Below the pieces are notes generated by a model that had not been told where the DNA came from, ran no database searches, and was given only the letters and a program-made list of their open reading frames with translations. A DNA stretch of 64,000 nt from Octopus sinensis (Eukaryota): contig NC_043005.1 of assembly GCF_006345805.1 (NCBI RefSeq), positions 27,156,001 to 27,220,000 on the forward strand, in the 5' to 3' direction. Made by a program: the position numbers and the translations under genes. Positions 10,085 through 54,585 of the stretch are shown piece by piece (within the stretch, counting starts at the first letter, position 1; each line of letters begins with the position of its first letter).

Positions 10085-10198
10085 GTTAAGGAATTTTGGT
10101 AAAATACAGAGATGTCAGAGTTCCACCGCAATAACCAATAAGAATATTCTTCAGTTACACGAAAGAGGTCTCTTCCAGAATGTCTTTCCCCCTGAAAG
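10085..10198 (+). CDS. YARS2: YARS2 exon 2 (LRNFGKIQRCQSSTAITNKNILQLHERGLFQNVFPPE)
   Basis: tttttgtag acceptor and AG|gtaact donor. The 'L..RGLF..FP' motif is typical of the bacterial-type/mitochondrial TyrRS N-terminus. Confidence 0.85.
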
Positions 10199-11489
10199 GT
10201 AACTTAATCAATTCTTTATTTGTTCTATTTTCTTTTTTTTTTTTTTTTGGTTTCACATACATTAAAGCGCCAATGATTGCTTGTAACCAACGGCAACAAC
10301 CACTTACCTCTGTCAGTCACTATGTCTTGAATGTGTTGCTTTTCTGGGCATTGACACACTAAAGGGCCATCATCATCATCTAACATCCGTTGTCCATGCT
10401 GGCATGGGTTGGACAGTTTGACTAGGGCTGGCACGCTGGAAGGCTGCACCAGACTCCAGTCTGATTTGGCATGGTTTTCTACGGCTGGATGCCTTTCCTA
10501 ATGCCAACCACTCTGAGACTGTAATGCGTGCTTTTACGTGTCACTGGCACAGGTGCCATTTGTATGACACCAGTGTCTGCCATGACTGCAATTGTTGCTT
10601 GGTTTGGTGAGTTTTCTTCTCAAGCACAACGTAATGCCAAAGGTTTCGATCATTGCCTTCGTGAAGCTCAGCACTTGAAAGGAATGTCTAGTGTAACAGC
10701 TGACTTAGTAGAAGCCCACAAGATTATCCAGACCACACACACACAAACAAGAAAATGAGATGACAAAAAATGAAGGATTATTTTATGAAGTTCATTAGCT
10801 TACAGCTGTTCTGCTATAAGATGTAGTGGACTCATAGTTGAGCACCTGAGTAACACCTTACAGTTTCATCAGAGCCTCTAACACTTTCTTCTGAAGCTTA
10901 CGTATATTGAGTTCTACAGGTTATTAGTCTCGTAATCTCTAACTGGTATATAAATGGCAGGCTTCCTTCAGTTATTGTCTCTCAAGGGTTTGGTTGTCCC
11001 AGTTCTATAATCAAAAATGCCTGTCCGGGATTCCACACATTGGGACTGAGCCTAAAACCATGTAACTGGGAAGTTCCAATATTGGACCCTGCTGGTGGCA
11101 CGTGAAAAGCACCATCCGAATGTGATTGATACCAGGTTTACCTCTCTGGCTCTTGTGCTGATGGCATGTAAAAAGCACCAACCAAACCTGGCCGATGCCA
11201 ATACCCCCCGACTGGTTCCCATGCTGGTGACACATAAAAAGCACTATCCAAACATGACCAATGCCAGACCCGCCTGACTAGCTCACATGCCGGTGGCACG
11301 TAAAAAGCACCCACTACACTCTCAGAGTGGTTGGTGTTAAGAAGGGCATCCAGCTGTAGAAACATTGCCAGATCAGATTGGAGCCTGGTGCAGCCACTGG
11401 CTTTCCAAACATCAGTCAAACCATCCAACTCATGCCAGCATGGAAAGCAGAGGTTAAACGACGACAATGAAAATACCATCCATACACAT

Positions 11490-12655: not shown

Positions 12656-12806
12656 TTCTCCAGATTTGATGAAGAAATTACTCAGTGGCCCTCAGTGTAT
12701 TTATTGTGGTTTCGATCCAACTGCCAGTAGTCTTCATGTTGGTAACCTTTTGGCTATCATAGCACTGTTACACAGTCAAAGAGTTGGACACCAACCGATT
12801 GCTGTG
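12656..12806 (+). CDS. YARS2: YARS2 exon 3, HIGH motif ([39 protein letters not shown])
   Basis: ttgcag acceptor and gtgggt donor. GFDPTA.SLHVGN is the class I TyrRS signature. Phases 2/0 are consistent with neighbouring exons. Confidence 0.97.
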
Positions 12807-14083: not shown

Positions 14084-14262
14084 GTGGGTGGCTGCACGGC
14101 CAAGATAGGTGACCCCAGTGGTAGAAAGACAGACCGAGTGCCAATGGACAATGAGTTGATTGAAGAAAACAGTTCCAGTATCAAAGAGAGCTTACAAAGA
14201 ATATTTGATAATCATCGTGACTTTCTGTGGAAACAGCCCAATAAAGAACTACCGGAACCTCT
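14084..14262 (+). CDS. YARS2: YARS2 exon 4 (VGGCTAKIGDPSGRKTDR...KELPEP)
   Basis: cttcag acceptor and gtgagt donor. GG.TA.IGDPSG is a conserved TyrRS motif. Confidence 0.97.
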
Positions 14263-15191: not shown

Positions 15192-15293
15192 AATCCTTAA
15201 CAATGAAGAATGGTACGCAAATCTCAATGTTATTGATTTTCTTGCGAAATATGGCCGATCTTTCCGACTAGCTGATATGCTGTCGAAACACAG
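15192..15293 (+). CDS. YARS2: YARS2 exon 5 (ILNNEEWYANLNVIDFLAKYGRSFRLADMLSKH)
   Basis: ttctacag acceptor and gtaaat donor. NN..WY...DFL...G..FR...ML is conserved. Confidence 0.95.
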
Positions 15294-16049: not shown

Positions 16050-16890
16050 TCATCATTATCATCGTTTAACGTCCGTTCTCCATGCTAGCATGGGTTGGAC
16101 GGTTCGACCGGGGATCTGAGAAGCCAGAAGGCTGCACCAGGGTCCAGTCTTATCTGGCAATGTTTCTACAGCTGGATGCCCTTCCTAACGCCAACCACTC
16201 CGTGAGTGTAGTGGGTGCTTTTTACGTGCCACCTGCACAGGTGCCAGGCGAGGCTGGCAACGGCCACGGTCGGATTGGTGTATTTTACGTGCCACCGGCA
16301 CGGAAGCCAGTCGAAACGGCACTGGCATCGGCCACGAGTCGGATAGTGCTTTTTACGTACCACCAGACCAGGGATCCTGGCTGGTTCAATTCGATTTTGA
16401 TTTCGCTTGCCCCAACATGTCTTCGCATATCATCATCATCATCATCATCGTTTAACGTCCGCTTTCCATGCTAGCATGGGTTGGACGGTTCAACTGGGGT
16501 CTGGCAAGCCCGAAGGCTGCACCAGGCCAGTCAGATCTGGCAGTGTTTCTACAGCTGGATGCCCTTCCTAACGCCAACCACTCCGAGAGTGTAGTGGGTG
16601 ATTTTATGTGCCACCGACACAGGTGCCAGACGAGGCTGGCAGACGGCCACGCTCGGATGGTGTTTTTTTTTTATGTGCCACCGACACAGGTGCCAGACGA
16701 GGCTGGCTGACGGCCACGCTCGGATGGTGTTTTCTTATGTGTCACCGACACAGGTGCCAGACGGGGCTGGCGGACGGCCACGCTCGGATGGTGTTTGTTA
16801 TGTGCCCTCAGCACGGAGGCCAGTCGTTGCGGTACTGGCTACGATCACGTTCGGATGGTTTTCTTATGTGCCACCGGCACTGGTACCACA
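16050..16890 (-). mobile_element. Two adjacent RTE-type 3' ends with internal VNTR
   Basis: (ATC)n tails at ~16050-16065 and 16428-16450, followed by the same CGTTTAACGTCCG...CCATGCTAGCATGGGTTGGACGG sequence and ~57-bp repeats. Confidence 0.75.
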
Positions 16891-17073
16891 AGGATACAAA
16901 TTCCATATATATACAAATATATACAAATTCCATATATATATATATATATATATATATCAATAATTAAATATATTCTGTTAGAATATTATACATTGAATTT
17001 ATAATGAGTGCTCTTTGTATAAAATGTCAAAAATATTAATACTATACAGTATTTAGACATTAATACGAGCGAT

Positions 17074-17272
17074 TATATATACTGTATTTTGAAATAATAG
17101 CATGAAATTCAATATAAAAAAAATCCTCATGAAGATATATATGTCTCAAATAGTATTGCATAAAAAAAAAGATATATTTTTAATATAATATTATTTTAGA
17201 CATATATATCTTCATGAGGATTTTTTTTTTATATTGAATTTCATACTATTATTTCAAAATACAGTATATATA
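17074..17272. repeat. AT-rich inverted repeat, ~72-bp arms
   Basis: 17074-17146 vs 17200-17272 (TACTGTATTTTGAAATAATAGCATGAAATTCAATAT...GAAGATATATATGTCT and its reverse complement). Confidence 0.85.
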
Positions 17273-18112
17273 TATATATTACAGATTGGTCAACATATAA
17301 TTTTTTAAATGTCAAATATTTCCCTGATGATATTTTGCTCGTAACCTGTAAATGCAGATTTATTGCACAAATTTGTAATTTATTGAATGAGTACAAATTG
17401 AAACAATTGTAGAAATGAATGATTATCATTTTATTAATAAATAATTATTAAGCTTCAACTCTCCATTTTCTTCTCTTAATTGAATATGGATTATATATAC
17501 TTAGCGGTTCGGCAAAAGAGACCGATAGAATAAGTACTGGGCTTACAAAGAATAAGTTCCGGGGTCGATTTGTTCGACTAAAGGCGGTGCTCCAGCATGG
17601 CCGCAGTCAAATGACTGAAACAAGTAAAAGAGTAAAAGAGTATATATATATATCGTGGCACTCTGTCGATTACGACGAGGGTTCCAGCTGATCTGATGAA
17701 TTGAACAGCCTGCTCGTGAAATTAATGTGCAAGTGGCTGAGCACTCCGCAGACATGTGTACCCTTAACGTAGTTCTCAGGGAGATTCAGCATGACACAGA
17801 GTGTGGCAAGGCTGACTCCTTCTTTGAAATACAGGTACAACAGAAACAGGAAGAAAGAGTGCAAGAAAGTTGTGGTGAAAGGCTTTGATTGGACTAAGTC
17901 TACAGTGGAAGACTCTTGCCCAAAGTGCTACAGATTGGGTTTGGAAGCAAACTTTTCATCCATACTGCCATCTCTCTTATTTTACAAATCTCATACATAC
18001 ATACATACATATATGTATATGTCTGTGTGTGTACATACATGTGTAGACACACATGCACTCTCATTCACACACACACGCACATAATAGAACTTGGTATTAA
18101 TTTTCCTTCCAG

Positions 18113-18227
18113 TGTGAAGAGTCGTTTGTCAAGTCCTGAAGGAATGAATTTTACAGAGTTTACTTACCAAATGTTCCAGTCTTTTGATTGGTTAACTTTA
18201 CACAAACATTACAATTGTTCCATTCAG
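18113..18227 (+). CDS. YARS2: YARS2 exon 6 (VKSRLSSPEGMNFTEFTYQMFQSFDWLTLHKHYNCSIQ)
   Basis: ttccttccag acceptor and gtaatc donor. G....EF.YQ..Q..D is the tyrosine-binding motif. Confidence 0.97.
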
Positions 18228-19021
18228 GTAATCCTATATTATTATTATTATCATCATCACCATCATCATCATTATTATTATTAAGGCAAGTGGTCTGGCA
18301 GAATTGTTAGTACACTGGACGAAATGCTTGGCAGTATTTCACCCATTGCTACCTGAAACAGAAAAAAAAAATGGCATTTTATGAACTTCATAGAAATACA
18401 AAATTTTTTTATGCATCTTTATATGTTTATTTTTTATTAACCTTTGAAATCGAGGAAACTTTTCTACTGCACCCTGAATATACATACTCTCTTTTTTTTA
18501 CTCTTTTACTTGTTTCAGTCATTTGACTGCGGCCATGCTGGAGCACCGCCTTTAGTCGAGCAAATCGACCCCAGGACTCATTCTTTGTAAGCCCAGTACT
18601 TATTCTTTCGGTCTCTTTTGCCGAACCGCTAAGTGACGGAGATGTAAACACACTAGCATCGGTTGTCAAGCAATGCTAGGGGGACAAACACAGACACACA
18701 AACACATATATATATATATATATACATATACGACAGGCTTCTTTCAGTTTCCGTCTACCAAATCCACTCACAAGGCTTTGGTTGGCCCGGGGCTATAGCA
18801 GAAGACACTTGCCCAAGATGCCACGCAGTGGGACTGAACCCGCACCCATGTGGTTGGTTAGCAAGCTACTTACCACACAGCCACTCCTCCATACATACAT
18901 ACACGTATACATCTTTTGTAGTTTTCTTAACTCATTATTGTCTTCCATGCCTAATTATGTTAACGAGTTCAGTTGCAGAGTAATCAACTGAATCGTTCTA
19001 GAATGTTTTCTTCTGTTACAG

Positions 19022-19099
19022 ATTGGTGGCAACGACCAACTTGGTAATATAGTTGCTGGTTATGAATTTATTAGTCAAATGACTGACGAGAAAGTATTG
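19022..19099 (+). CDS. YARS2: YARS2 exon 7 (IGGNDQLGNIVAGYEFISQMTDEKVL)
   Basis: ttacag acceptor and gtgagt donor at 19100. GG.DQ.GNI motif. As written the exon ends in phase 0 (see finding). Confidence 0.93.
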
Positions 19100-19761
19100 G
19101 TGAGTTGTTGTCACACACTTTCTGTTGTTTTTGTTGTAATTATGAGGTAACGAACGAGTAGAATCGTTAAAGCTCGTCAGACAAACTGTTTGATGACGTT
19201 TCTTCCAGGTTTTTACATTCTGAGTTCAAATTCTGCCAAGGTTAACTTTGCCTTTCGTCTCTTTGAGGTCAATAAAATACAGTACCTGTAACATGGGGTA
19301 CGGGGCGGAGGGAGGAGGGGGTCGATACACTTGACTTGAAATAGATACTCTACTTGAAATAGATACCTTTAAACCCTGCAACAGATGGCGTCCCATTCAG
19401 GAGAAGGAATAGTGTTGTGATTTTGGTTACTTATATGTCATGGGTCCTAGGGGTTGAGAATTAAAAAAATCTAAAAGTTGCTGTTATCGCTGTGATGGCA
19501 TGTGGCTAAATGGTTACGGCATTCAGCTCGCAATTATAAGGTTGAGAGTTCAATTCCCAACGGCGAATTGTGTCCTTGAGTAAGGTACTTCATTTCCGCT
19601 GCCCCAGTCCGCTCATTTTTGCCAACTGATTTGGTTGAGTTGAGCCAACTCAACTAATTCTCTCCCCTGCTAAACGCGAGTTCCATGCTGCTCTTTTACA
19701 AGGCACTGCTCTTTCCCATACCCCTGCATTCTCTCATACACTAACCTCTCCTTCTCCTCCT

Positions 19762-20520
19762 CATCATCATCGTCGTTTAACGTCCACTTTCCATGTTGGC
19801 ATGGGTTGGATGGTTTGACTGAGGATTGGCAAGCCAGGAGGCTGCACCAGGCTCCAGTCTGATCTGGCAAAATTTCTACAGCTGGATGCCCTTCCTAACT
19901 CCGACATGAGGACCAGTCCGGCGGTCCTGGCAATGACCACGCTCAAAAGGTGTTTTTTATGTGCCACCTGCACAGGAGTCAGTCTGGAGGCACTGGCAAC
20001 GACCATGCTTGAATGTTGTTTTTCACGTGCTGGTGGCACGTGAAATGTGCCAATTAGGCAATGCTGGCAACAATCACGCTCAAATGGTGCTTTTTACATG
20101 CCACCAGCATGCGAGCCAATCCATGGCCCTGGCAATGATCATACTCAGATGGTACTTTTAATGTTCCACTGGCATAGGACACGGGTTATGGTCTCACTCT
20201 GCTTGTCAGGTCTTCTGAAGCACAGCATATCTCCAAAGGTCTCGGTCACTAGTGTCATTGCCTCAGTAAGGCCTAATTTTCGAAGGTTGTGCTTCTCCAC
20301 CTCATCCCACGTCTTCCTGGGTCTACCTCTTCCACAGGTTCCCTCCACTGTTAGGGTGTGACACTTTTTCACACAGCTGTCCTCATTCATTCGCAACACA
20401 TGACCATACCAGCACAGTCATCTCTCTTGCACATCACATCTGATGCTTCTTAAATCCAACTTTTCTCTCAGGGCATTTACACTCTGTCGTGTATGCACAA
20501 CCAACCCCAATTTTCTTATG
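19762..20520 (-). mobile_element. RTE LINE 3' fragment (ORF2 C-terminus + 3'UTR)
   Basis: Minus-strand peptide VLRMNEDSCVKKCHTLTVEGTCGRGRPRKTWDEV (G.RGRP..W typical of RTE), followed by VNTR, conserved 3' block and (TGA)n tail. Confidence 0.8.
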
Positions 20521-20964
20521 GAGTTTGTTATCTTTCAAGCTGCATGGCAGCCTCAATAGTGCTGGTGGCATGAAAAGAGCATCCAGTCCATGCTGTGAAG
20601 TGGTTGGCATTAGGAAGGGCATCCAGCTGTAGAAACCATGTCAGAGCAGTGAACTAGAGTACGGTGTAGTTTGTGGACCCATTGGATCCTGTCAAAACTG
20701 TGCAACCAATGCTAGCATGAAACATATGCATTAAATGATGTTGAGGATAATGATACACACACACACACATACAAATTATAGCTATTATTACAATACAATA
20801 GTATTATTTTCCAGCATTAAGCACCGTAAAAGTTGAATTATAAATACGGTATTAACTTATAAACCTTTTATATACTTGGTAATATCTTATGCTTACAAAA
20901 TGAAATATTGTGTCCTTGTTAGTCATTAATTAATATATGTCTTGGTATAAAATGTTTATTGCAA

Positions 20965-21075
20965 GGTCTCACCATACCACTGCTAACCACAACTACTGGA
21001 GATAAACTGGGAAAATCTGCTGGGAACACAGTTTGGTTGAATGCTGATAAAACCTCACCTTTTGATCTTTATCAG
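20965..21075 (+). CDS. YARS2: YARS2 exon 8, KMSKS-like motif ([37 protein letters not shown])
   Basis: G.KLGKS.GN.VWL...KTSPF..YQ signature and gtgagc donor. The 5' boundary is ambiguous (20923, 20965 or 20966). Confidence 0.93.
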
Positions 21076-21568
21076 GTGAGCTCTACACTTTGTTAATGTT
21101 GTTGTTATTGTAATGTCGTTGCTGTTAAGTAATGCTGATCACGTGGTGTTTATTACATAAGGATGATGTATTAGGTTGTTCCGAAATTAATGGCCGATTT
21201 CAGAAACATAATTTTATTCTGGAAAAATTAACAATAGAAATGTTTTGATTAGTCAGAGTATGAGCCGTGAACATCTACGCTCCTCTGCCATTGATCAATG
21301 AGATTATTTACGCCTCGTTGATAAAACCTCACCTTTTGATCTTTATCAGGTGAGCCATACATTTTGCTAATGTTGTTGTTATTGTAATGTCGTTGCTGTT
21401 AAGTAATGCTGATCACGTGATGTTTATTACATAAAGATGACATATTATAAATTATGTTGAATAATGTCAATCATATTTTATCAAGTAAAATCATGGGACA
21501 TTAGTAGAGGGGTTTATGTTATGTTGTTTTGTTGTTTAATATTACATTATGTTTTGTTTATTTTTCAG

Positions 21569-21667
21569 TATTTTTTGAACCAACCTGATGCAGATGTTGA
21601 AAGATTGTTAAAACTTTACACATTTCTCAGTAATGAACATATTGAAAACATCATGGAAGAACAACGA
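21569..21667 (+). CDS. YARS2: YARS2 exon 9 (YFLNQPDADVERLLKLYTFLSNEHIENIMEEQR)
   Basis: tttttcag acceptor, gtgagt donor, 99 nt, phases 0/0. D.DVER.LKL.TFL motif. Confidence 0.95.
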
Positions 21668-21863
21668 GTGAGTGTTGTTCTCTTTGTTTATGTATTTCTG
21701 TGGTTGTTAAACCCTTGGTTACCTTCTGATCAAGCAGGCCTATGATCAGAAATGCACAAGCCACAATTTAAAGAAATAAAGGTATAATTTGAAGGAGACT
21801 TAACTACTATTTCTAGCAGATCAACTGATCGTTTAAATCAGAGAAGAACTGAAAGTGTTTTAA

Positions 21864-22084
21864 CCCTTTAGTGTTCACATTATTCTGCTAAAATTAATGT
21901 TTTTTCATCCACACTGTTTTGAACTAATCATGCATTATCTTGTAGCTATGAGATTTTGATGGGGTAGCTGTTAATTTTTAAAATGATATTGTAGGGTTGG
22001 TGTGAGAGACCAGATCTGGCCAGTTTGACTATAAAACAGGCTGAATACTTTTGGCCGGATATGGCCGATTTAAATGCTAAAGGG
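21864..22084. mobile_element. piggyBac-type MITE
   Basis: TTAA|CCCTTTAG ... CTAAAGGG|TTAA. Confidence 0.75.
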
Positions 22085-22303
22085 TTAAAAGCTGTTGCGG
22101 AGATGCATCTTGAATAACAAAAATAACAAACCTTTAGTTTTATTAACCAAAACCTTGTGAATGGATTTGATTGATGGAAAGTGTATACCAAATTATTAGT
22201 TTTCAGTTGCTACTTGTGGACTGTGTTATAAAGTGTCATCTAAGAGACCTGGGTTCAATTTCTGTCAAGTACTCTGTACATAGATTAGTGGTCAATATGT
22301 TAA

Positions 22304-22765
22304 CCCTTTCATTACTGTATTTATTTTGAGATGCTCTGTGTTCTTTTCAATTACTTTAAATATAATAAAGAATTCAGTAAAATAATTTAGTTATCATTTA
22401 GATAGTGTTAGGAACATAAATTGTGACTAAGGTTTGGTGAAAGATTTTAATACGGAACTTTTGAAAACAAGACATTTGTACTCAGAGCCAGAGCCATTTT
22501 CAGCCAGGTTGGTATCAAAAGGGTTAAGAATTGTTTCTCTGTTATATATTTTAAGAATTGGGTCTCTATTATGTATTTTAACCCTTTTGTTACAGTATTT
22601 CTGTTGAGATGCTCTGTGTTTCTTTCAATTAGTTGTCACTAAGCTGGTGTTAGGAACATAAATTGTGACTAAGGTTTGTGGAAGATTTTAATTCAAGACT
22701 TATTGAAACAAGATATTTATACTACAGAGCCAGAAGTGGTTTCAGCCATGTTAGTATCGGAAGGG
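22304..22765. mobile_element. Two related piggyBac-type MITEs (22304-22523, 22582-22765)
   Basis: Each is TTAA|CCCTTT ... AAGGG|TTAA with a shared body (GAGATGCTCTGTGTT; AGGAACATAAATTGTGACTAAGGTTTG). Confidence 0.75.
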
Positions 22766-24305
22766 TTAAAGTATCAGTTAAGACAATGTTTCTTGAAGGT
22801 GAGGCTCTGTGAGTATTGAAAATAGAGACAAACAAATTGCCATGTTGAATGGTTGAAATGGCTTTTAGCTATTTTGTGTCCAGTAGCATAGTGAAGAAAG
22901 AATTGCATAGATACAAATTATATTTTGTGAATTTACTCTTTTACATGTTTCAGTAATTTGAATGTGGCCATGCTGGAGCACCGCCTTTAGTTGAAGAAAT
23001 CAACCCCAGGACTTATCATTTGTAAGCCGAGTACTTATTCTAGCGGTCTCTTTTGCCAAACCACTAAGATCTGGGGACATAAACACACCAACATCAGTTG
23101 TCTAGCGATGGTGGGAGGGAGGACAAAGACACACACACATAAATATATATACATATATATAAGACTGGCTTCTTTCAGTTTCCATCTACCAAATCCAATC
23201 ACATAGCTTTGGCCAGCCCAAGTCTATAGTAGAAGACACTTGCCCAAGGTACCACGTAGTGGGACTGAACCCCGAACCATGTGGTTGGGAAGGAAGCTTC
23301 TTACCACACAGCCACTCCTGCGCTTATTTGTTAATAAAGAGAGGTGGGGTGGGGAAAGGACAAACAATTCATTATTTTTGGTAGGGATGGGGAAGGGTTT
23401 TTTGGGTTTGTCAGTCTGAGAACCACAATACAAGAAAGCAAGGTTTCAATTCCTACTAGGTACTCATTTAAGTTTGCTTTTTATGTATAATTTTCAAATG
23501 AGAAACTGCCTTCAGTCTCAGAGTTTCTGGAAAGGATCACAAATATTCTTTCTCTGAATATGTCTTTTAAAAATAGGAAAACTCAACATAAGAATTTACA
23601 GACTTTAGAGAGAACATGAAATAATTTTTTCTAGAACAATGTATCTCGAAGCACCTAAAACTGTAAATAATAGTTTACAAAAACTGGGATCCACTATTGC
23701 AAACGAGGAAAATTTGAACCCCAATCAATCAAACCTGTGCTCAAAGATATTCCAGCCATGGCCATCTTGTTTATTCAAATATATCTAGGACTACATTATG
23801 TAATGTGTCCTAGAGGGTAAGTTTGTAGTTTGAGGGAGATCTAACTATTATTTCTAGCAGGTCATATGACCAATTAGAAGTTCCTGTGTTAGCTTATGTA
23901 CAGTAGTTGTTGCTGTTAGTTTGTTCCTGGCCAGTCTTGATTAAGCAGACACAATCAGAGGTAATCTGACCATGACCATCTCATCTGTAATGCATTTCAT
24001 TTATACTATATTTTTTCTAATGTGTTTTTCCTTTTTTAAAGGCCGTTGGGTATTATATGAGGGACATATGGTTGCTATTTCTAACAGATTGAGTCACCTT
24101 GTGGAGGCTCTATTGTTCTGTTGCTGCTTTGTGTGTGTGTGTGTGTGTGTGTGTTGTTAGTGATAGCAATATGTAATGTAGTTATTGATTGTTTAATACA
24201 CAGAAATATTGCTATAATTAATAAAATGTGATAAATGAAATACGAAAGCATTAAAACATTAATTAATTAATAATTAATGTCCTGAAATATTTTGTTAATT
24301 CACAG

Positions 24306-24372
24306 GCCAAACCACATGAAAGAATTGGTCAGAGAACTCTTGCTGAACAAGTGGTCTTGTTGGTACATGATG
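24306..24372 (+). CDS. YARS2: YARS2 exon 10 (AKPHERIGQRTLAEQVVLLVHD)
   Basis: cacag acceptor and gtgact donor. P..R..Q..LA..V..LVH motif. Confidence 0.92.
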
Positions 24373-25063
24373 GTGACTACAGTTCTTTACTTATTAAGTA
24401 CACACTTACACACACATGCACGTGCGCACGGGCGCACACACACACACACCACATACATTCACACACATCATCATCATTTTGAAGTCCACTTTTCCATGCT
24501 TTTATGGGTCACACAGATTTTCTATGGCCAGATGCCCTTCCTGTCATCAACCCTCACTTCTTTTCATGCAAGGTTACATTTCCCCATGGCCAGACATGTT
24601 TTCACAGCATATTGGGAATGAAGGACACTGCTTGTATGTTGGTGACACTCATTTACGACTAACATGCAACACACCGAGACCTCTGGAGATATGCTGCGAT
24701 TGAGAAGACCCGGTAAGTAAAGTGAGATCATAACTGTAGATCACCAGTGTTTCATAACCAGCCCATTTAAAAAGCACCTTTGAATTGTCAGGCAACATGC
24801 CATGCTTGAGGAGACTTATTGAGTCAAGTAAAATCAAAATCAAAAGATCAGAAATGAAATCACAATCAAATGGAAATTGTAGTTGTGGCTGTTAGCAGTG
24901 CTGGTGGCACGCAATAAGCACCATTTATACGTGGGTCGTTGCCAGAGCCATCTGACTGGCTCCCTGTGCCAGTTGCACGTAAAAAGTACCATCTGAACGT
25001 GGTCGATGCCAGCATGGAAAACGGATGTTAAATGATGATGATGATAATAACACACACACACAG

Positions 25064-25094
<31 letters not shown>

Positions 25095-26049
25095 ATGGGC
25101 TTCTTTCAGTTTCTTATTTCTTTACTGCCCACAAGGGGCCACACACAGAGGGGACAAACAAGGGCAGACAAAGGCATTAAGTCAACTACATCGACCCCAC
25201 TATGTAACTGGTACTTATTTAATTGACCTCAAAAGGATGAAAGGCAAAGTCAACCTCGGCAGAATTTGAACTCAGAATGTAGCGGCAGACGAAATACCAC
25301 TAAGCATTTCGCCTGGCGTGTTAATGTTTCTGCCTGCTCGCCACCTTTTTTTAGTTTCTGTCTACCAAATCTACTTCACAAAGCTTTGGTTAGCCCAAGG
25401 CTATAGTTGAAGAAACTTGCTCATGGTACGATGGGGGAAGGGGGTGCTGGATTTGGCAGAACTGTTAGAACATTGGGAAAAAATGCCTTGTGATATTTGT
25501 TCCAGCTCTTAATATTCCGAGTTCAAATCCAGCCACGGTCAGTTTTGTCTTTCATTCCTATGGGGGATGGTGGGGGTCAATAAAATGTAATACATTTAGT
25601 CGGGCCAATGATATCAACTAACCCCCTGCCCCACTACCTCCTCTCAAGTCTTCTGGTTTGTGCCTAAAGTGGTAACCACCACCATCTTCATCATCATCAT
25701 CCTTTAATGTCCATTGTCCATGCTGGCATGGGTTGGACAGTTTGACTAGAGTTTCCAAGCTGGGGAGCTGTACCAGACTCCGGTCTCATTTGGCATGGTT
25801 TCTACAGCTGGATGCCCTTCCTAATGCCAACCACTCCACAGAGTGTAATGGATGCTTTTACATGGTGGTGATGGTGGTGGTGGTGGCACTTAGTGGCATT
25901 CTGTCCAATTTTTACTTTCTGTGTTCAAATGTTGCCGAGATCGACTTTGCCTTTCATCCTTTTGAGGACAATAAAATAAGTAACAGCTGAGCACTGTGGG
26001 GCGGTTTCGATGTAATCAACTCATTCCATCCCTCGAAATTGCTGGCCTT

Positions 26050-27020
26050 GTGCCTCAAGGTTCAGTGCTTGGGCCCTTGTTGTTCTTAGTCTTCATAAAT
26101 GACTTGCCCGACGACCTCACGCAACACACCCTTCTATTTGCCGACGATATCAAACTGGTCGCTCCTCGCGGTAATATAGAGGATCTTCGTCGATGCCTCC
26201 ACCAAATTTGGAAGTGGTCTAACGATTGGGACCTGTGTCTGAACGTGTCAAAGTGCTGTCATCTGCCTGTCGGCTCTACTCCTGCAACTCAACTTGATTT
26301 CGAGCTGGGTCGTCTGCTGCTGGAGAGGACCGATCAGGTAAAGGACCTAGGTATCTTGGTGGATTCCTCCTTTTCGCCTTCGGCCCAGTGCGTCCATGCT
26401 GCCAACAAAGCACGCGGAATTCTGTTCTTGATTCGACGGTCATTCGGAATGCTCACAGCAGCCATATTCCTACCACTCTATGTCACGCTGGTGAGACCCA
26501 TATTGGAGTATGGGATTCAAGCCTCTTCTCCTTATCTCCTCAAAGACATACAGCATCTCGAAAGAGTCCAGAAGCTGGCTACCTGCATGGTTCATGGTCT
26601 CAAAAATTTGTCCTACGAAGAAAGGCTGAGGACGCTCGACCTTTATTCTCTTGAAAAACGCCGCCGCCGTAGTGATCTCATTCTCGCCCACAACATCATA
26701 AGCGGAAAGTGTAACCTCTCGAAAGAGCTGTTCTTCACTCCTGCTCCAGAGCGTCGGCTGCGGGGTCATTCCGAAAAGCTCTACCTGCAACGATTTCATC
26801 TCAATCGAAGGAGAGGAGCTTTCTCCGTCCGGGTTGCGGATCCGTGGAACAAGCTGCCAGACGAGATGGTAAAGATGCCGACGACCGCTTTGTTCAAAGC
26901 CTCCCTGGACCTCAAGTGGCCTGAACTCTTTACATGAACACCACCCTGTACTTAACTCCATGTCCCCCTACATGGCCTTGCTATTTGCTTTTGAGCCAAA
27001 TTAACTAACTAACTAACTAA
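26050..27020 (+). mobile_element. 5'-truncated CR1/L2-like LINE with uninterrupted RT C-terminal ORF and (TAAC)n tail
   Basis: VPQGSVLGPLLFLVFINDL, LFADDIKL, RPILEY, RGHSEKL, stop at 26937, short 3'UTR, TTAACTAACTAACTAACTAA. Confidence 0.92.
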
Positions 27021-27308
27021 CATATTTGAAACTATTATTATTATTATTGTTATTATTCACCAGTTAATGTCCATTGTCCTTGCTGGCATGGATTGGAAGG
27101 TTTGACCAGAGTTGGCAAGCTGGGGATCTGCACCAGACACTGGTCTGATTTGACATGGTTTCTATGGCTGGATGCCCTTCCTAATGCCAACCTGCCAACC
27201 ACTCCACAGAGTGTAATGGGTGCTTTTACGTGGCTTTTACTTTTTCCTAGATTCCAAACACAGCGGAAAGTCGAATAAACATTTGTATTATATTTGGAAT
27301 ATTTGTAG

Positions 27309-27497
27309 AATCTGGTTTAAAGATGGCCAAACGCTGGACAGAAGCCTTCTTCACCAATAACACAGATGTTCTTAGCAGACTCTCAGAATCTGAAATAACC
27401 GAACTCTTTCGAAGTGCAGCCACATGTCGCATGTTGTTGGAACCAGGAATGACAGTTCTGGAGACGTGTATGAAAGCCAACTGTTTTGACCGGGAAG
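27309..27497 (+). CDS. YARS2: YARS2 exon 11 (SGLKMAKRWTEAFF...LEPGMTVLETCMKANCFDRE)
   Basis: tttgtag acceptor, gttagt donor, phases 1/1. Matches the TyrRS anticodon-binding region (GL..AKR.T.A; PG..VL..C.KA). Confidence 0.93.
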
Positions 27498-27805
27498 GTT
27501 AGTTGCTTTTTATCATCATCATCATCATCATCATCATCAGTGTTATTGTCATCATTGTCCTCCTCATCATCATTATTGTCATCATGATTGTTGCACTTGT
27601 CATCATCACCATTGATGTCATCGCTGTCATCATTATGATCATCAGAACAAACACCTGGATCATTATTGTCTGTGCCACTTACTCCAGCCTCTTCATCATC
27701 ATTTCTAATTTCAATACTGTCATCACTGCAACTGCCAGCATCATCATCATCATCATTATCATAATCTTGGCAGACTCTCAGAATCTGAAATAACCGAACT
27801 CTTTC

Positions 27806-28045
27806 AAAATGACTCGTAAAAGCACCATCCGTTTGTGGCCATTTGCCAGCTCTGTCTGGCACCTGTGCAGGTGGCACGTAAAAAGCACCCACTACACTCA
27901 CGGAGTGGTTGGCGTTAGGAAGGGCATCCAGCCGTAGAAACACTGCCAGATCTGACTGGAGCCTGATGCAGCCTTCTGGCTTCACAGACCCCAGTTGAAC
28001 CGTCTAACCAATGCTAGCATGGAAAGCGGACGCTAAATGATGAGG
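27806..28045 (+). mobile_element. 5'-truncated RTE-type 3' end
   Basis: Same conserved block and (TGA)n tail as the other copies. Confidence 0.75.
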
Positions 28046-30746
28046 ATGATGATGATGATGATCTTCACTACCAACACTACCACCATATCATTACCACCAC
28101 CACCACCACCACCACTGCCACTGCCACCCTCATTGCCACTGTTGCCATATTTTGGCAGCTTTGTGCTTTCTCAGTTGCCTTGACATTATCTTGCCAGTTG
28201 CTATTTTGAATGAGAACAGGACAGTGTCTGATGTGTATACAGCTCTTCTTCACTATTTAAAAAAAAAAAAAATCTTCGTTTTTGTCTTGCCTCTGTCTGT
28301 CTTAGCTGCTTGGTCATCAACACCACCATCACAACTTTCTATCACCACCAGTTTCTGTACATTTTCCATACCAGCTGCATTGGATGGGTTCTCATAGTCT
28401 ACTTCTCATTGTCGGTTCTCAGTCTGTTTCATTTGTCGTTGCTACTTCCCTAGATGAGTCACGGGACTATTTCTCACTCATGTATTTCATTTCTCACACG
28501 TTTCATGATTTCCTGTGGCTTGATGTGTTTTCTCTTGTTTAATCACTTTACAACGTTTTTCTGGGTATTTTTTATTGCAGAACCGGCACTAGAGAAGTTG
28601 TCATGTCCCCGACAAAGCTAAAGCGAGGTACCTCTTGACCCTTTGTCATCTGCACTAGTTTCTCAACCATTTTACAGAATATACTGGATGCCGTTTGTCA
28701 TGGCACCAGCACCAATGAAGTTATCTTGTACCTATTTCTTTACTACCCACAAGGGGCTAAACACAGAGAGGACAAGCAAGGACAGACAAACGGATTAAGT
28801 CGATTATATCGACCCCAGTGCGTAACTGGTACTTAATTTATCGACCCCGAAAGGATGAAAGGCAAAGTCGACCTCGGCGGAATTTGAACTCAGAACAGAG
28901 TGGCAAACGAAATACTGTTAAGCATTTTGCCCGGCGTGCTAACGTTTCTGCCAGCTCTCCGCCTTATCTTGTACCGCATTAGACTAAGAAGGCATGACAT
29001 GAGAACACGAATAGGAAAGAGACTGAGGTGAGAGGAAGAGTCAGGAAGGAGTGACAATATGATGGATGGACAGAATAATGAGGTGGGGAGAGAGAGATGA
29101 ACAGTAATGGAGGTAGACAGTGGTAAGACTGAGTGATAAAGGAATGTGTTGGGTATAAACAGATTCAATGGAATCTATTAAAAATAAGCCAAGTCTTTGT
29201 GGTGGATGAAATAAGGATGATGGTGGTGGGGATTGGATACTTACAGCTGCAATATAATTCCTTGTTACTGTGTATGTGTGTGAGAGAGGGAGAGAAAGAG
29301 ATGGGAAGGTCAGACAAAGCCAGTGCCATCTGTAGTTTCACAAGGCAGTATGGTACAGTGAATGGGTGAAATTTATTGCCATCATCCATGCCGGTGACAC
29401 GTAAAAAGCACCATCCAATCATGGTCGATGCCAGCTCCTCTGGCCCCTGTGTTGGTGGCATGTAAAAAGCACCCACTTCACTCTCATAGTGGTTGGCATT
29501 GGAAGGGCATCCAGCTGTAGAAACACTGCTAGATCAGATTGGGGTCTGGTGCAGCCTCCTAGCTTCCCAGACCCCAGTCGAACCGTCCAACTCATGCCAG
29601 CATGGAAAACGGACGTTAAACGATGATGATGATCTCTCGTTTCATTAACAACATAATACAGTGGATAGAAAGAAAGAGAGGAACAGTGTTTCATGTGTGT
29701 GTATATATATAGGTGCAGGAGTGGCTGCGTGGTAAGTAGCTTGCTTACCAACCACATGGTTCTGGGTAGAGTCCAACTGCATGGCACCTTGGGCAAGTGT
29801 CTTCTACTATAGCCTCGGGCTGACCAAAGTCTTGTGAATGAATTTGGTAGGCAAAAACTGAAAGAAGCCTGTCGTACATATGTGTGTGTGTATATATATA
29901 TATATATGTATGTATGTGTTTGTCACCCCACCATCATTTGACAATCGATGTTAGTGTGTTTACGTCCCCATAACTTAGTGGTTTGGCAAAAGAGACTAAT
30001 AGAATAAGTACTAGGCTTACAAAGAATAAGTCCTGCGGTCGATTTGCTCGACTAAAGGCAGTGCTCCAGCATGGCCGCAGTCAAATGACTGAAACAAGTA
30101 AAAGAGTATATGTATGTATTTGAGGGAGATGAGATGGGAAGGAGGAGAGAAGATGAGAGAATATCAAAAAGCAGGTGAGGTAGTGGATGTAGATACACTT
30201 TACTGAGACTAGGCTTCTGCACAGTTTCTATCTACTAAATTCCACTCATCATCATATTGATCATATCATGGCTGTGTCATAAGACCCTTCCCCAAAGTGT
30301 TACAGGTGGAATAAAACCCCAAAAGCACCTGGGTACTTCAACACAAGCAGCTTAACTATTCAGCCATATCTGGTAGCATAAACAATTTTTTTCTTTTCAT
30401 CCCAACCTCTGCTTGGCAGAAAAAGGAAAATTTGATCTCTTAACAGGGTTTAAACTAAGAACATGAAGGGCCATAAGTAAATACCACCAGGCATTTTCTT
30501 TGTTGCTCTTATTCAACCATTCTTATTAATATCACAACCTAATATATCTCTCTTCCTTTACTTGTTTTCAGTCATTTTGATTGCAGCCATGCTGGAGCAC
30601 CGCCTTTAGTCGAGCAAATCGACCCCAGGACTTATTCTTTGTAAGCCCAGTACTTATTCTATCAGTCTCTTTTGCCGAACTGCTAAGTGACGGGGACGTA
30701 AACACACCAGAATCGGTTGTCAAGCAATGCACAGACACACAAACAT

Positions 30747-30788
<42 letters not shown>

Positions 30789-31769
30789 TATATATACATA
30801 TATACAACAGGCTTCTTTCAGTTTCCGTCTACCAAATCCACTCACAAGGCATTGGTCGGCCCGGGGCTATAGCAGAAGACACTTGCCCAAGATGCCACGC
30901 AGTGGGACTGAACCCGGAACCATGTGGTTGGTTAGCAAGCTACTTACCACACAGCCACTCGTTAATAAAAGAAATCTATGTGTATATATATGTATAAATG
31001 TATGTATGTATATGTGTGTGTGTGTGTATACACACTCACACACACACACACACAGTGATACCTCGCAGTATGAGTTTAATTCGTTGCATGACCGAGCTCG
31101 TTTTACGATTTACTCAATTCACAAATCAATTTACCCCATTGAAATTAACTAAAATATAATTAATCCGTTCCAGCTCCACCAAAACCACTCAAATATAATT
31201 TTTTATGGGTTTTGAAACAGAATAGGTGTAGTTACAAGTAAAATGACAATTATAAAAAAGGGAATGCAAAAGAAATATCTAAACTGGTTTTATTAACTGA
31301 ATTACCTTAAAGATGGGACGATTTGTGTACTCGTACTGCGGATTACCGCTCGTACTTCAAGACAAAAATTCACACAAGTCTCGGCTCCTACGGCAAATTA
31401 CTCGTAAAATGGGGCACTCGTACTGTATATTGATAAGTCTCTTGTCTAAAAATAAACAGTTGATTTTAGAAATCACTACGCAAGAGTTACCTCCCTTGAA
31501 ATATATGCTCCCTTTATAAATTCGCCATCCTCTCCTTTATTTACTCAGCTTATTTCTCGACAATATTCTTGATTAATTTATGCTATATTTCCACTTGCAG
31601 ATTGTGTGTGTGTTTGACCTGGATAGTTAGCCAAGTAATATAGAAAAGTGTAATACCCAGTGACTGGTGTTGCAGTATAATTGTAAACTGCTATAAAAAC
31701 AAAACGAGATGCCTTCGAGAGAGGCATCAAACTCCTAGTTCAGGCTCTCAAAGTCATGGAGAGAGTCCT

Positions 31770-32420
31770 AGCACAATTACAGTTTGGTTCTGTGTTTGGG
31801 AGAAGTACCTCAGATGTAATCTGCTGGTGAGGCGACTGTGGGAGAAATACGTGGCTGAGAGTAAACCGTTATTTCTGGCTTTTGTTGATTTGGAAAAGGT
31901 CTTTGACAGTGTATCACATACAATAATCTGGTGTGTCACATACAACAATCTTGTGATGAATGGTTTGTGAGAAATATACAAGCCTTGTACAAAAAGATGC
32001 AGTAAGTAAATGACCTCAGTAAGTAAATGACCTCAGTTATGAATTTAGCAAGAGAGTTGGAGTCCATCAAAGCTCAATTTTGTCTTCTCCTATTCATCAA
32101 AGTCCTACAGACCATCCCAGAAGAGTTGTCCATGGGAATTCTTATATACTGTAGTTCAATCTACAGGGGAATTAGAGAGGAAATTCTGGGCATGGATGCT
32201 AAAGCTAGAATTTAGAAGTCTTAAGGTAAACTTTGCAAAGACTAAGGTTTCGGTGAACAGGAAAGAAGACAGGGCTTGGATATCATGAGGGTATCATCAG
32301 GAAAATGGCTTAACTTGATATGCTGAGAAGCAGATTGATGGACACACAAACAAAGTGTTGTAAACTTGTAGCAGACTAACAAACAAAAAAAAACCCATAT
32401 GTGACAGATGCTCTGGAGTA
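31770..32420 (+). mobile_element. Degenerate RTE RT fragment
   Basis: FVDLEKVFDSVSH, and LSPLLFIKVL-like pieces with stops and frameshifts. Confidence 0.55.
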
Positions 32421-34261
32421 GTGCATACTACGAACACACTGGAACTAGATTTTATTAAACCATTAACACCCAAATTTCTTCATCCATATTTTTTGCCTTT
32501 GCCAGGTGTCTTAGGAGTTAAAATAATATTTGGTATTCAAATTTTCTTCATATGTGAATTATTTTGGAAATTATGGTAAATTTTTCGAAAAGCCCCAAAT
32601 GGGGTGGGGTCGCTGAAAACAAGCATATTTATCCTTTTCTATCCAATTGCAATAATAAACATATTAGTTATTTTGAAACTATAGAATGAAATGCGAATGT
32701 AATATCAATGAATGATACAGATGGGAAATGCAAAACAAAAAAAAAGTTATCAAAAGAGTCAATAATTTTGTAGTTCAAAAATTGCAATTTATGACATAAA
32801 ATGTCCACTAGAAAGAGCCAGAACTAATAAAGACAAATTTTAACTCCTAAATATTCTTTTCTACTCTAGGCATAAGGTCTGAAATTTTTGGGGGAAGGAG
32901 GCCAGTCGATTAGATTGACCCCAGCACGCAACTGGTATTTAATTTATCGATTCTGAAAGGATCAAAGCAAAGTCAACCTCAGCAGAATTTGAACTCAGAA
33001 TGTAAAGATAGAAGAAATACCGCTAAGCATTTCACCCAATGTGCTAACAGTTCTGCCAGCTCGCCACCTTTTTTAATTACTAAATATTGTTAAACACACC
33101 TCTGCAAATGCAATGTACTTTAGCTATTCACTTTAAATACAAGGAACAACCAGCAGTGAGACTGTTTTTAGCAGATCCCCAAATGGGGCTCACGGCAGGC
33201 AAGGGGTTAAATGTTCAGATGGCCACTAGAAGTAGTTGAGGCCTGGCTCTCTGTTGGTTATGGTGATGAGTGTTCCAGTTGCTAAAATCAACCAAATACC
33301 CTTCTAGTGAAATTAACATGCAAGTGGCTGAGCACTCCATAGACACACGTACCCTTAACATAGTTCTCAGGGAGATTTGGCATGACAGAGAATGTTCAAG
33401 GCTGGTCCATTTTGAATTACAGGTATAACTCATTTTTACCAGCTGAATGGACTGAAGCAATGAGAAATAAAATGTCTTGCTCAAGGGCATAACATGCTGC
33501 TGGGAATTGAACTCTCAACCCTGCAATCATGAGCTGAATGCTCTAGCTACTAAGCCACACTTGTCAGCCAGGAGATAGGATTAGCAAATTCCACCAGAAG
33601 AAGACTCCGTTGATACAAGGATCAGCTGAAGCAAAACCTAAAACTGACTGGAATCGATCCCAAAACTTGGTGCATTGAAGCTCAGGACAATTGGATCATT
33701 TTGAAGCTGAACGACTGAGGGAAGAGGAAGAGAAACAACAAGAAAGAAAATGGAGGCTGCAACAAGCAAAGCCTCCACAACTTTGCAACTGATGCTTCCC
33801 TGCATGAATCGGCCTCGTTAGTGATCAGAGGCATAAACATGGACAGAGAAGAAGTGGTCAAAAAGAAACAAAATAAATTTCTGGACACATGAAAAAACAC
33901 CACCGATGATAATAATTACCAGGGAAGGTGGTGATTCTGAATGTATAGCAGCCAAGATAAGAAGAGATTGAGAAAGTTCAGAAAATTCTTGCTGCTGTTG
34001 TTTCTTACAAAGGTTTTTTTGCCCTCAAAGTGAGAAGTAGATTGTCTGATGCTACAAAAGACCTGTTTACCCATGGAAGAATAACCCCTAACACAAGGCT
34101 AGTCATTATCTGGGCATAGAAACTGTGTCAAAACAGACATTGGGGTTCGGTGCAGTCCTCTGACTTGTCAGCTCCTGTTGAACCATCCAACCCATACCAG
34201 CATAGAAAATGAATGCTAAATGGTGGTGGTGATGATGATGATGATTGTGTGTGTGTCTCTC

Positions 34262-34312
<51 letters not shown>

Positions 34313-34919
34313 GCTGTGTGGTAAGAAGCTTGCTTACCAACCACATGGTTCCAGGTTCAGTCCTGCTGCATAGCACCTTGGGCACGTGTCTTCTACTATA
34401 GCCTCATGCCAAACAAAACTTTGTGAGTGGATCCAGTAGATAGAAACAGAAAAAGTCCATTGTAAAAAGCACCCACTACACTCACGGAGTGGTTGGCGTT
34501 AGGAAGGGCATCCAGCCGTAGAAACACTGCCAGATCAGACTGGGCCTGATGCAGCCTTCTGGCTTCACAGACCCCAGTTGAACCGTCCAACCCATGCTAG
34601 CGTGGAAAGCAGACGCTAAATGATGATGATATACATACATATATATATATATATATGTTTGTGTGTCTGTGTTTGTCCCACCACTGTCACTTAACAATCA
34701 ATGTTGGTGTGTTTACATTCCTGTAACTTAATGTTTTGGCAAAAGAGACCAATAGAATAAGTACTAGACTTACAAAGAATAAGTCCTGAAGTCGATTTGT
34801 CTGACTAAAGCAGTGCTCCAGCATGGCCACAGTCAAATAACTGAAACAATTAAAAGAATATACACACACAGGTCAGGTTTTTTTTACCATTTCCATTTAC
34901 CAAATTCTCGGTGGCACTA

Positions 34920-35883
34920 TCAATGGAAACAGTAGTTGTGATACCTGTGCCGGTGACACATAAAAAGCACCATCCGAACGGCTGTTGCCAGTGCAGCCTC
35001 CACTGGCTTCTGTGCCGGTGGCACATAAAAAGCACCATCCGAACGTGACCGATGCCAATCCCGCCTCGAATAAAAAGCACCAACCGCACATAAAAAGCAC
35101 CAACCGATCGTGGGATCCCGGAACATCTCGCTGTGCTTGAGGAGACCTGTTGAGTCAAGTGCATGTACATGAACTTCGAACCAAATATCAATGGAAACAG
35201 TAGTTGTGATATCTGTGCCGGTGACACATAAAAAGCACCATCCGAACGTGGCCGTTGCCAGTGCAGCCTCCACTGGCTTCTGTACAGGTGGCACATAGAA
35301 AGCACCATCTGAACGGTTTCTGTCCCGGTGGCACATAAAAAGCACCATCCGAACGTGGCCGATGCCAGCACCGCCCCGACTGGCTTCTGTGCCGGTGACA
35401 CATAAAAAGCACCATCCGAATGTGACCGTTGCCAGTGCAGCCTCCACTGGCTTCTGTGCCGGTGGCACATAAAAAGCACCATCCGAACGTGACCGATACC
35501 AACCCCGCCTCGAATGGCTTCTGTGCCGGTGGCACATGAACATCGAACCAAATATCAATGGAAACAGTAGCTGTGATACCTGTGCCGGTGACACATAAAA
35601 AGCACCATCCGAACGTGACCATTGCCAGTGCAGCCTCCACTGGCTTTTGTGCTGGTGGCACATAAAAAGCACCATCCGAACGTGACCGATGCCAGACCCC
35701 TCTGGCACCTGTGCAGGTGGCATGTAAAAAGCACCCACTACACTCGCGGAGTGGTTGGCGTTAGGAAGGGCATCCAGCTGTAGAAACACTGCCAGATCAG
35801 ACTGGAGCCTGGGGCAACCCCTGGCTTCCCAGACCCCGGTCGAACCGTCCAACCCGTGTTAGCGCGGAAAACGGACGTTAAAC

Positions 35884-35915
<32 letters not shown>
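34920..35915 (+). mobile_element. RTE-type 3' end with greatly expanded internal VNTR
   Basis: About a dozen CACATAAAAAGCACCATCCGAACG units, then the conserved 3' block and (GAT)n tail at 35883-35916. Confidence 0.8.
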
Positions 35916-35919
<4 letters not shown>

Positions 35920-35989
35920 ATTCATAGAAGCAGATATTTTGTGGCTGGATGCTCATTTACAGCTGTTGCAATATGTCAAGAGAAGGACA

Positions 35990-36030
<41 letters not shown>

Positions 36031-37125
36031 CATGTTGGACCGTTGAACTCTGCGCATTTTTTCTCTCTTCATTTTTTCCCTCTTATTGCTTTCTGTTGAA
36101 GAGCATAGGCTCAAAACATAAAGGGCTTTTCTATTCTTTCTGTGCTACCGGCATGGGTGCCAATCAGGCAGTACTGTCATCAGCCACGACAATGACTTCA
36201 CTTGATTCAACAGGTCTTCGCAAGCACAGTTTATTGTCCAATGATGGAAGGGTACTCTTAAATGGGCCGGTTATGTTGTACTGCCATAGGCCATGGTTAC
36301 AGTCTCACTTACCTTGCTGGGTCTTCTCAAGCACAACATATCTCCAAAAGTCTTGATCACTTATCATCACCTCCATAAGGCCCAACGTTTGAAGGTCGTG
36401 CTTCACCATCTCATTATCCTTTTCACCATCATCATCATCATTGTTTAACATCTATTGTCCATGCTGGCATGGGTTGGACAGTTTGACTGGGCTGGCACTC
36501 TGGAAGGCTGTGCAAGGCTCCAGTCTGATTTGGTATGGTTTTCTAAGGCTGGATGCCCTTCCTAATGCCAACCACTCTGAGAGTGTAATGGGTGTTTTTA
36601 TGTGACACCGATATCTTCCACGATTGCAGTTTTGCTCGGTTTGATGGGTCTTCTTCTCAAGCATGACATAATGCCAAAGGTCTTGGTCATTGCCTCCATA
36701 AGGCCCAACATTTGAAAGGAGCTCAGCCACTTTGCCTTCATGAAGCCCAACACTTGAAAGGAACTCAGCCACTTGCCTGAGTGTATATATGTATGTGTGT
36801 GTATGTGTATGTATGTATAGGGCATCCAGCTGTAGAAATCATGCCAAATTAGACTGGAGTCTGGTGCAGCCTTCAAACATGCCAGCCCAGTCAAACCATC
36901 CAACCCAAACTAGCATGGACAAGATATTAAATATATATATATGACAGGCTTCTTTCAGTTTCTGTTTGTCAAATCTATTCACAAAACTTTGGTTGGCTCA
37001 GAGCTATAGAGCAGAAAACACCTGCCCAAAATGTCACACATTGGGACTAAGCCTAAAAATGTGTGGTTGGGAAACAAAATTGTTAACCAAACAGTCAAGC
37101 TTGTACCTATGTAGGTGTGTATGTA

Positions 37126-37984: not shown

Positions 37985-37990
37985 TATTTA

Positions 37991-38027
<37 letters not shown>

Positions 38028-38543: not shown

Positions 38544-38593
<50 letters not shown>

Positions 38594-40628: not shown

Positions 40629-40670
<42 letters not shown>

Positions 40671-41845: not shown

Positions 41846-41971
41846 TAGATGCAGAACGCATCATCCGAGCTGGTGGTGTCCGTTTCAACCACCAGAGGGT
41901 TGCAGAACCAGATATGGTTTTACAGGAAGGTCAGCATATACTCTCAAATAAGTTATCCCTCATCCGTGTTG
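41846..41971 (+). CDS. YARS2: YARS2 exon 12, S4-like domain (DAERIIRAGGVRFNHQRVAEPDMVLQEGQHILSNKLSLIRV)
   Basis: ctttctacag acceptor and gtaagt donor. R.I..GGV..N.Q.V..P...L..GQHIL.N.LSL motif. It follows a 14.3 kb intron. Confidence 0.95.
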
Positions 41972-44011: not shown

Positions 44012-44049
44012 GTAAAAAGAACCATTATATTGTGAAGTGGCTCCCATAA
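44012..44049 (+). CDS. YARS2: YARS2 last coding exon (GKKNHYIVKWLP-stop)
   Basis: atttaag acceptor in phase 1. GK.N.YI.KWL matches the TyrRS C-terminus, TAA at 44047-44049. Summed exons = 1386 nt (461 aa + stop). Confidence 0.9.
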
Positions 44050-53889: not shown

Positions 53890-53971
<82 letters not shown>

Positions 53972-54086
53972 ATATATTATATATATATATATACATACAC
54001 ACGCACACACACACATATATATATATATGTGTATATACATACATACACACACATATGTGTATATAATTACAGATCTATGTATGCAC

Positions 54087-54526: not shown

Positions 54527-54585
<59 letters not shown>

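Follow-up and report, generated by a model that had tools for sequence, protein, structure and literature searches.

The YARS2 gene in the window and its interrupted frame

The window analysed here is a stretch of 64,000 nucleotides (nt) from Octopus sinensis (CM016867.1:27156001-27220000), which carries on its + strand coding exons 2-13 of YARS2, the gene for mitochondrial tyrosyl-tRNA synthetase (TyrRS). The reading frame of this gene is interrupted at the junction of exons 7 and 8, and the origin of this interruption, probably a single T missing from the reference assembly, is the subject of this report. All positions are those of the window unless a chromosome accession is given. The window was aligned to the annotated YARS2 locus in GCA_006345805.1 (CM016867.1) and showed 0 mismatches across all 47,049 overlapping nt. 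An approximate human YARS2 sequence was used as a probe for the first exon search only; the conclusions rest on the database proteins P0003 (XP_029641145.1), P0004, P0123, P0124 and P0126. A protein search with the spliced gene model returned the O. sinensis entry 'tyrosine--tRNA ligase, mitochondrial' (XP_029641145.1, 475 amino acids (aa)) with 100% identity over the whole query. According to precomputed data, this protein contains PF00579; its identity is 80% to the Argonauta and 58% to the Haliotis protein. Both class I catalytic motifs are present, the HIGH-type motif as HVGN and the KMSKS-type motif as KLGKS.

Exons were placed by tblastn of XP_029641145.1 combined with exon mapping, and all lie on the + strand. 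Exon 1, with the ATG, is located ~2.2 kb upstream of the window start and joins exon 2 (10085..10198) in frame. Exon 3 (12656..12806), which encodes the HIGH-type motif within SLHVGN, is bounded by GT-AG introns and is in frame. The spliced gene model continues with exon 4 (14084..14262), exon 5 (15192..15293), exon 6 (18113..18227), exon 7 (19022..19099), exon 8 (20966..21075), exon 9 (21569..21667), exon 10 (24306..24372), exon 11 (27309..27497) and exon 12 (41846..41971), the last of which encodes the S4-like C-terminal part. Exon 13 (44012..44049) contains the stop codon, and the annotated gene ends at the same base. It is preceded by an AAG acceptor, as the first-pass annotation of this DNA had stated for the last exon.

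Exon 7 comprises 78 nt in the assembly and ends with GAG AAA GTA TTG, i.e. in phase 0, immediately before the donor GTGAGT (19100..19105). Intron 7 (19100..20965, GT...AG) is 1866 nt long and closes with the acceptor cAAG (20962..20965; AG at 20964-20965). Exon 8, with a length of 110 nt, starts with GT CTC ACC ATA CCA, encodes the KMSKS-type loop KLGKS and needs phase 1. The phases on the two sides of the intron therefore clash, and the canonical GT-AG join of exons 7 and 8 translates as ...DEKVL VSPYHC, followed by a stop after six codons. The first-pass annotation had described this clash of phases and the resulting stop, and both were confirmed by reading and translating the sequence. The coding sequence (CDS) has 1427 nt, one below a multiple of three. 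The remaining eleven YARS2 introns are GT-AG introns and keep the frame, and the exon 7/exon 8 junction is the sole lesion of the gene. Accordingly, intron 7 of the window has the ends and the position of a canonical U2-type intron and fails to keep the frame, whereas the same intron of O. vulgaris keeps it. The frame break is real in the deposited sequence.

The RefSeq protein bridges this junction by means of one additional base. When one extra G is placed between exons 7 and 8, the 13 exons yield XP_029641145.1 residue for residue; without it, the translation breaks. The bases 19100 and 20965 are both G and, therefore, the intron of the RefSeq model must be either GT..AA (19100-20964) or TG..AG (19101-20965). 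The join creates a Leu at residue 266 (KVLGLT; 19097-19100 / 20965-20967), and the protein name carries no low-quality flag. Residue 266 was inspected in an alignment of 113 animal mitochondrial TyrRS proteins, in which it is aromatic in 108 cases (F 59, Y 46, W 3) and Leu solely in the O. sinensis model. Phe stands at this position in the seven remaining mollusc proteins aligned, of which six come from cephalopods.

Orthologous junctions and the origin of the frame break

The genomic YARS2 loci of O. vulgaris (protein CAI9728858.1), O. bimaculoides (XP_014788133.1), Argonauta hians (GAB1609793.1) and Sepia pharaonis (CAE1178780.1) were compared at the exon 7/exon 8 junction, a check that had been proposed in the first-pass annotation. 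With the intron in lower case and a slash at each splice site, the junction reads AAA GTA TTT G/gtgagt ... ttgcaag/GT CTC ACC in O. vulgaris, AAA GTG TTT G/gtgagt ... ttgcaag/GT CTC ACC in O. bimaculoides, AAA GTA TTT G/gtgagc ... gttgtag/GT CTG ACC in Argonauta hians and AAA GTG TTT G/gtaaga ... tattcag/GA CTT ACC in Sepia pharaonis. All four genomes have three Ts and a canonical phase-1 GT-AG intron at the same position, between the V-F-G and the L-T codons. In the window, a run of only two Ts is found (19097..19098, CM016867.1:27175097-27175098). The donor GTGAGT is identical in the three Octopus species, and the acceptor ttgcaag/GTCTC of the window is kept in O. vulgaris and O. bimaculoides. 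Judged from these genomes, YARS2 intron 7 is a canonical U2-type GT-AG phase-1 intron, which is conserved across coleoid cephalopods.

The comparison with O. vulgaris is the closest one, since the two species split only ~2.5 million years ago (PMC10700109). Alignment of exon 7 plus donor gives a single gap column (TT versus TTT), and apart from this column exons 7 and 8 are identical in both species. In O. vulgaris, all 12 introns of YARS2 are GT-AG introns, exon 7 has 79 nt and ends in phase 1, the CDS has 1428 nt, and translating it yields the annotated CAI9728858.1 without any difference. Over the CDS, 1426 bases align with O. vulgaris and contain 10 substitutions, which fall into 8 synonymous and 2 non-synonymous codon differences; no other indel is present. 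The flanking non-coding DNA has approximately one gap opening per 370 nt in the same comparison (43 in the 16-kb block 17641-33594). On the protein level, KVFGLT is present in O. vulgaris and O. bimaculoides, which both share a 90% cluster with the O. sinensis protein, as well as in Argonauta hians, the Sepia cluster (P0005, P0126) and Haliotis.

On this comparative basis, the frame break is best explained by one T missing from the O. sinensis reference assembly at the end of exon 7, i.e. by a consensus error, to which we assign a probability of about 0.78. The true end of exon 7 would then read AAA GTA TTT G/gtgagt, a run of three Ts having been rendered as TT, and the true mRNA would encode ...K V F G L T I P.... 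The deposited form with two Ts (CM016867.1:27175094-27175105) is GTATTGGTGAGT, and GTATTTGGTGAGT would be expected as the three-T genomic form. The first-pass annotation had named a missing T in GTATTTG/GT as the most parsimonious of three rescues; the pattern GT(A/G)TTTG/GT(G/A)AG at the donor in four cephalopod genomes and the annotated Phe protein obtained from the O. vulgaris join both support this choice. Residual one-base indels are a typical defect of PacBio long-read assemblies. The present case combines a single-base difference in a mononucleotide run with a gene that is otherwise intact and under purifying selection and with error-prone long reads; as stated in the title of Li et al. 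2020, cited in PMC10700109, the assembly was produced from PacBio long reads.

Leu266 of the RefSeq protein is, under this explanation, probably an artefact, namely a workaround of the annotation for the missing base. RNA reads containing TTTG/GTCTC may have been aligned to a genome one base short by accepting one mismatch and a non-consensus junction, which would result in the RefSeq model. A genuine non-consensus intron would be expected to recur in relatives or to be backed by transcripts; the orthologues have GT-AG introns, and the non-consensus join is implied by the RefSeq protein only.

Several observations weigh against a missing T. One-base indels that distinguish the O. sinensis locus from that of O. 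vulgaris are about symmetric (60 versus 48, many of them in poorly aligned repeats), and therefore no obvious excess of deletions exists at this locus in the O. sinensis assembly. A run of two or three bases is not a classic long homopolymer. The unflagged Leu of RefSeq, if based on RNA evidence taken at face value, would fit an mRNA reading ...GTATTGGGTCTC..., and a junction contradicting the missing T would be ...AAAGTATTGGGTCTCACC or one with a 42-nt extension. Further, TT could be the true allele of the sequenced animal, as comparative data alone do not separate an error from an allele. Further searches gave no relevant result. A 63-aa junction peptide retrieved only two unrelated fragments in a protein search, the sparse word index of which is unsuited to queries of this length. 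The best match of a 157-aa segment across the junction, in a protein collection including RNA-seq-derived (Logan) fragments, was 63% identical, and no octopus was among the hits. An exact look-up of the only open reading frame of at least 30 aa overlapping the T run (19016-19114, - strand) had nothing on record for independent O. sinensis contigs, and a literature search yielded no relevant account of frameshifts in this assembly.

Explanations other than a consensus error were weighed at the level of the genome and of the RNA. A true deletion of one T would make the deposited sequence a heterozygous or rare loss-of-function allele, which the assembler happened to choose while a TTT haplotype supplies the enzyme; the mRNA junction ...AAAGTATTTG/GTCTCACC would be expected for this allele as well as for an assembly error. 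The deposited TT is compatible with such an allele, the non-coding DNA of O. sinensis and O. vulgaris often differs by natural one-base indels, and according to general genetics a heterozygous carrier can harbour a recessive null allele of an essential gene. However, it should be far less probable a priori that one animal has a private frameshift in a given essential gene than that a long-read consensus retains an indel, and with 8 synonymous versus 2 non-synonymous differences the rest of the gene is not relaxed. We therefore infer that the missing base reflects a consensus error and consider the allele unlikely. Should the lost base be a G instead, GTA TTG G/gtgagt would be the true sequence, one G of GGG would have dropped out of the assembly, and canonical splicing would give KVLGLT with a real Phe-to-Leu exchange. 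This agrees with a RefSeq protein composed of the exons plus one G, and the junction expected is ...AAAGTATTG/GGTCTCACC, which would equally result from a non-canonical or editing-made acceptor. Nevertheless, it demands a T>G substitution in addition to a deletion in the assembly, although a single event suffices, the Leu would be unique among the 113 homologues at an aromatic position, and O. vulgaris, despite the recent split, has TTT in otherwise identical exons; a missing G is thus very improbable. The possibility that the locus is a decaying pseudogene, with a functional YARS2 elsewhere in the genome, would account for the frameshift in the deposited sequence. It was rejected on comparative grounds as hardly credible: apart from the frameshift no lesion is present, the other splice sites are intact, the CDS is constrained as described above, O. 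vulgaris has a single YARS2 locus, with which this one is collinear, and the 90% cluster contains one O. sinensis protein.

If TT were real, the frame could also be restored during splicing. An AG at 20921-20922 forms a cryptic upstream TAG acceptor (20920..20964 including the 42-nt stretch behind it), and its use would insert 14 residues before GLTIPLL, with the mRNA join 19099/20923 reading ...GTATTG/TCATTAATT.... As the first-pass annotation had noted, the stretch 20923-20964, directly before GGT CTC, is in frame and open in the window; moreover, the pyrimidine tract of this acceptor (tgtgtccttgttag) is better than that of the cAAG acceptor. The frame is kept, though, only because exon 7 lacks one base. 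Behind a phase-1 donor, as present in the sister species, the join would read G/TC ATT AAT TAA and stop immediately, O. bimaculoides has a 6-nt AT-repeat insertion within the 42 nt, as expected of an intron, and the RefSeq protein lacks the additional residues. Fourteen stop-free codons are not rare by chance, and the insertion would hit the conserved strand leading into the KMSKS loop. The 14-aa insertion was therefore rejected on comparative grounds, being out of frame in the sister species, and is extremely improbable. A rescue on the RNA level could also consist of a GT..AA (19100-20964) or TG..AG (19101-20965) intron, or of adenosine-to-inosine (A-to-I) editing of A20964, by which CAA becomes a CAI acceptor; each would yield KVLGLT. 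Heavy RNA editing is a trait of coleoids, and the ADAR2 pre-mRNA is a known case of AI acceptors created by editing. The geometry works and the RefSeq protein matches such a join: TTGCAA at 20959-20964 is followed by GGT CTC, AA stands where AG would give an in-frame acceptor, and a G at A20964 would indeed make a phase-0 CAG acceptor, as had been pointed out in the first-pass annotation. Four orthologous genomes, however, need no such rescue, which would be a dependency less than ~2.5 million years old in an essential gene, splicing would have to pass over the real AG one base downstream, and the resulting Leu is unique among the homologues. A search for a duplex partner of A20964 gave as best inverted match to 20935-20995 within 17000-24000 only 13/14 nt (E = 0.28), which is at chance level, and in a 301-nt fold A20964 was paired with a probability of 0.14; neither the complementarity search nor the fold indicates the double-stranded RNA on which an editing-created 3' splice site would depend. 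Of the inverted RTE pair reported for intron 7, the two repeat copies in opposite orientation are present, but their arms (19859..19905 and 20603..20649) are complementary over just 40-47 nt with 83-88% identity, and they are located more than 300 nt from the acceptor. Editing of A20964 is unneeded because the cAAG/GT acceptor is conserved and in frame in three Octopus species once the T is restored. Hence, the editing-made acceptor was rejected on comparative grounds and for lack of a duplex, and rescue on the RNA level as a whole is judged about as improbable as a missing G. Slightly more doubtful still is the full scenario in which the two-T allele is fixed in O. sinensis and functional TyrRS with Leu266-Gly arises only via an RNA-level rescue younger than ~2.5 million years (A20964 edit or GT-AA / TG-AG splice).

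With the missing T as the preferred explanation, the junction is most likely no biological feature, and the gene is most likely an ordinary, intact, single-copy mitochondrial TyrRS gene with a conserved canonical intron. For practical use, the analysis flags a probable one-base reference error at CM016867.1:27175097-27175098 and, in XP_029641145.1, an error hidden behind a non-consensus splice and a spurious Phe266Leu. Caution is advisable in scans of cephalopod genomes for editing-dependent splice sites, since an assembly defect of one base at the end of an exon can look like such a site; a glance at the corresponding junction of a sister genome settles these cases quickly. Were the two-T allele real and homozygous, the function of an essential gene would rest on splice-site recoding, which would be notable; if fixed, it would make an essential housekeeping gene dependent on editing or non-consensus splicing.

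Repeats and gene architecture of the locus

A segment of 129 nt (21045-21173) takes in the last 31 nt of exon 8, its donor GTGAGC and the beginning of intron 8. A second copy with 93.8% identity follows 274 nt downstream at 21319-21447, so that intron 8 contains a decoy duplicate of the 5' splice site. The duplication is also present in O. vulgaris (25223-25328 of the fetched locus), whereas O. bimaculoides has a single copy; it therefore originated in the sinensis/vulgaris lineage and is no product of the assembly. The arms of the inverted repeat in intron 7 are fragments of two copies of a dispersed repeat of ~150 nt, of which the window contains at least 24 copies, on both strands and with 70-87% identity (e.g. 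19755-19905, 11330-11470, 16050-16195, 16430-16578 and 40718-40861). Intron 11 (27498-41845) spans 14.3 kb in O. sinensis and in O. vulgaris. The whole YARS2 gene is shorter in O. bimaculoides (~21 kb) and Argonauta (~15 kb), and thus the introns have been expanded through repeats.

Further downstream, a 184-nt unit repeated in tandem (2.9 copies, 93% matches), (CATA)n x133 and several AT/GT/CAT microsatellites were found in the regions 60338-60876, 61477-62000, 53493-54065 and 54482-54603. These repeats explain the pronounced GC and AT skews of the regions at 54-56 kb and at 60-62 kb. In O. bimaculoides, the YARS2 protein is indexed under two overlapping gene ranges (GCA_001194135.2 CM046610.1:91348505-91373805), one with exons 1-3 and the other from exon 3 onward, and these match two RefSeq isoform accessions which share one protein sequence. 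The divergent upstream neighbour of YARS2 is TRMT6 (Gcd10p) in O. bimaculoides and Argonauta.

Comparison with known systems

ADAR2/ADARB1 auto-editing, in which AA is converted to AI, resembles the junction in that the window has AA where AG restores the frame and in that the host is a heavily editing coleoid. The difference is that no duplex was found around the site, the orthologues need no editing and a genuine AG follows one base downstream. A residual single-base indel in a PacBio continuous long read (CLR) consensus shares more features with the present case: a short T run is one base below every orthologue, the gene is intact, the assembly is PacBio-based, and the annotation seems to have worked around the defect. 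In contrast to the usual case, the indel is deduced here by comparison, the run has 3 nt, and the RefSeq entry is not flagged as frameshift-corrected, an apparently non-consensus intron having been used instead.

Compared with the bacterial-type/mitochondrial class Ic TyrRS (PF00579, human YARS2), the octopus protein is full length (475 aa) and has HVGN, KLGKS and an S4-like C-terminus. Mitochondrial TyrRS proteins of molluscs outside the octopods are 58-66% identical to it. No functional difference from the family was found; the annotated Leu266 alone departs from it, and this residue is probably an artefact. The closest counterpart of the junction itself is the conserved coleoid YARS2 intron between VFG and LTxPL. 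The window intron lies at the same position and has the GTGAGT donor and the ttgcaag/GT acceptor of the two other Octopus species, and it differs only in that the preceding exon has 78 nt instead of 79 nt, which turns a phase-1 donor into a phase-0 donor.

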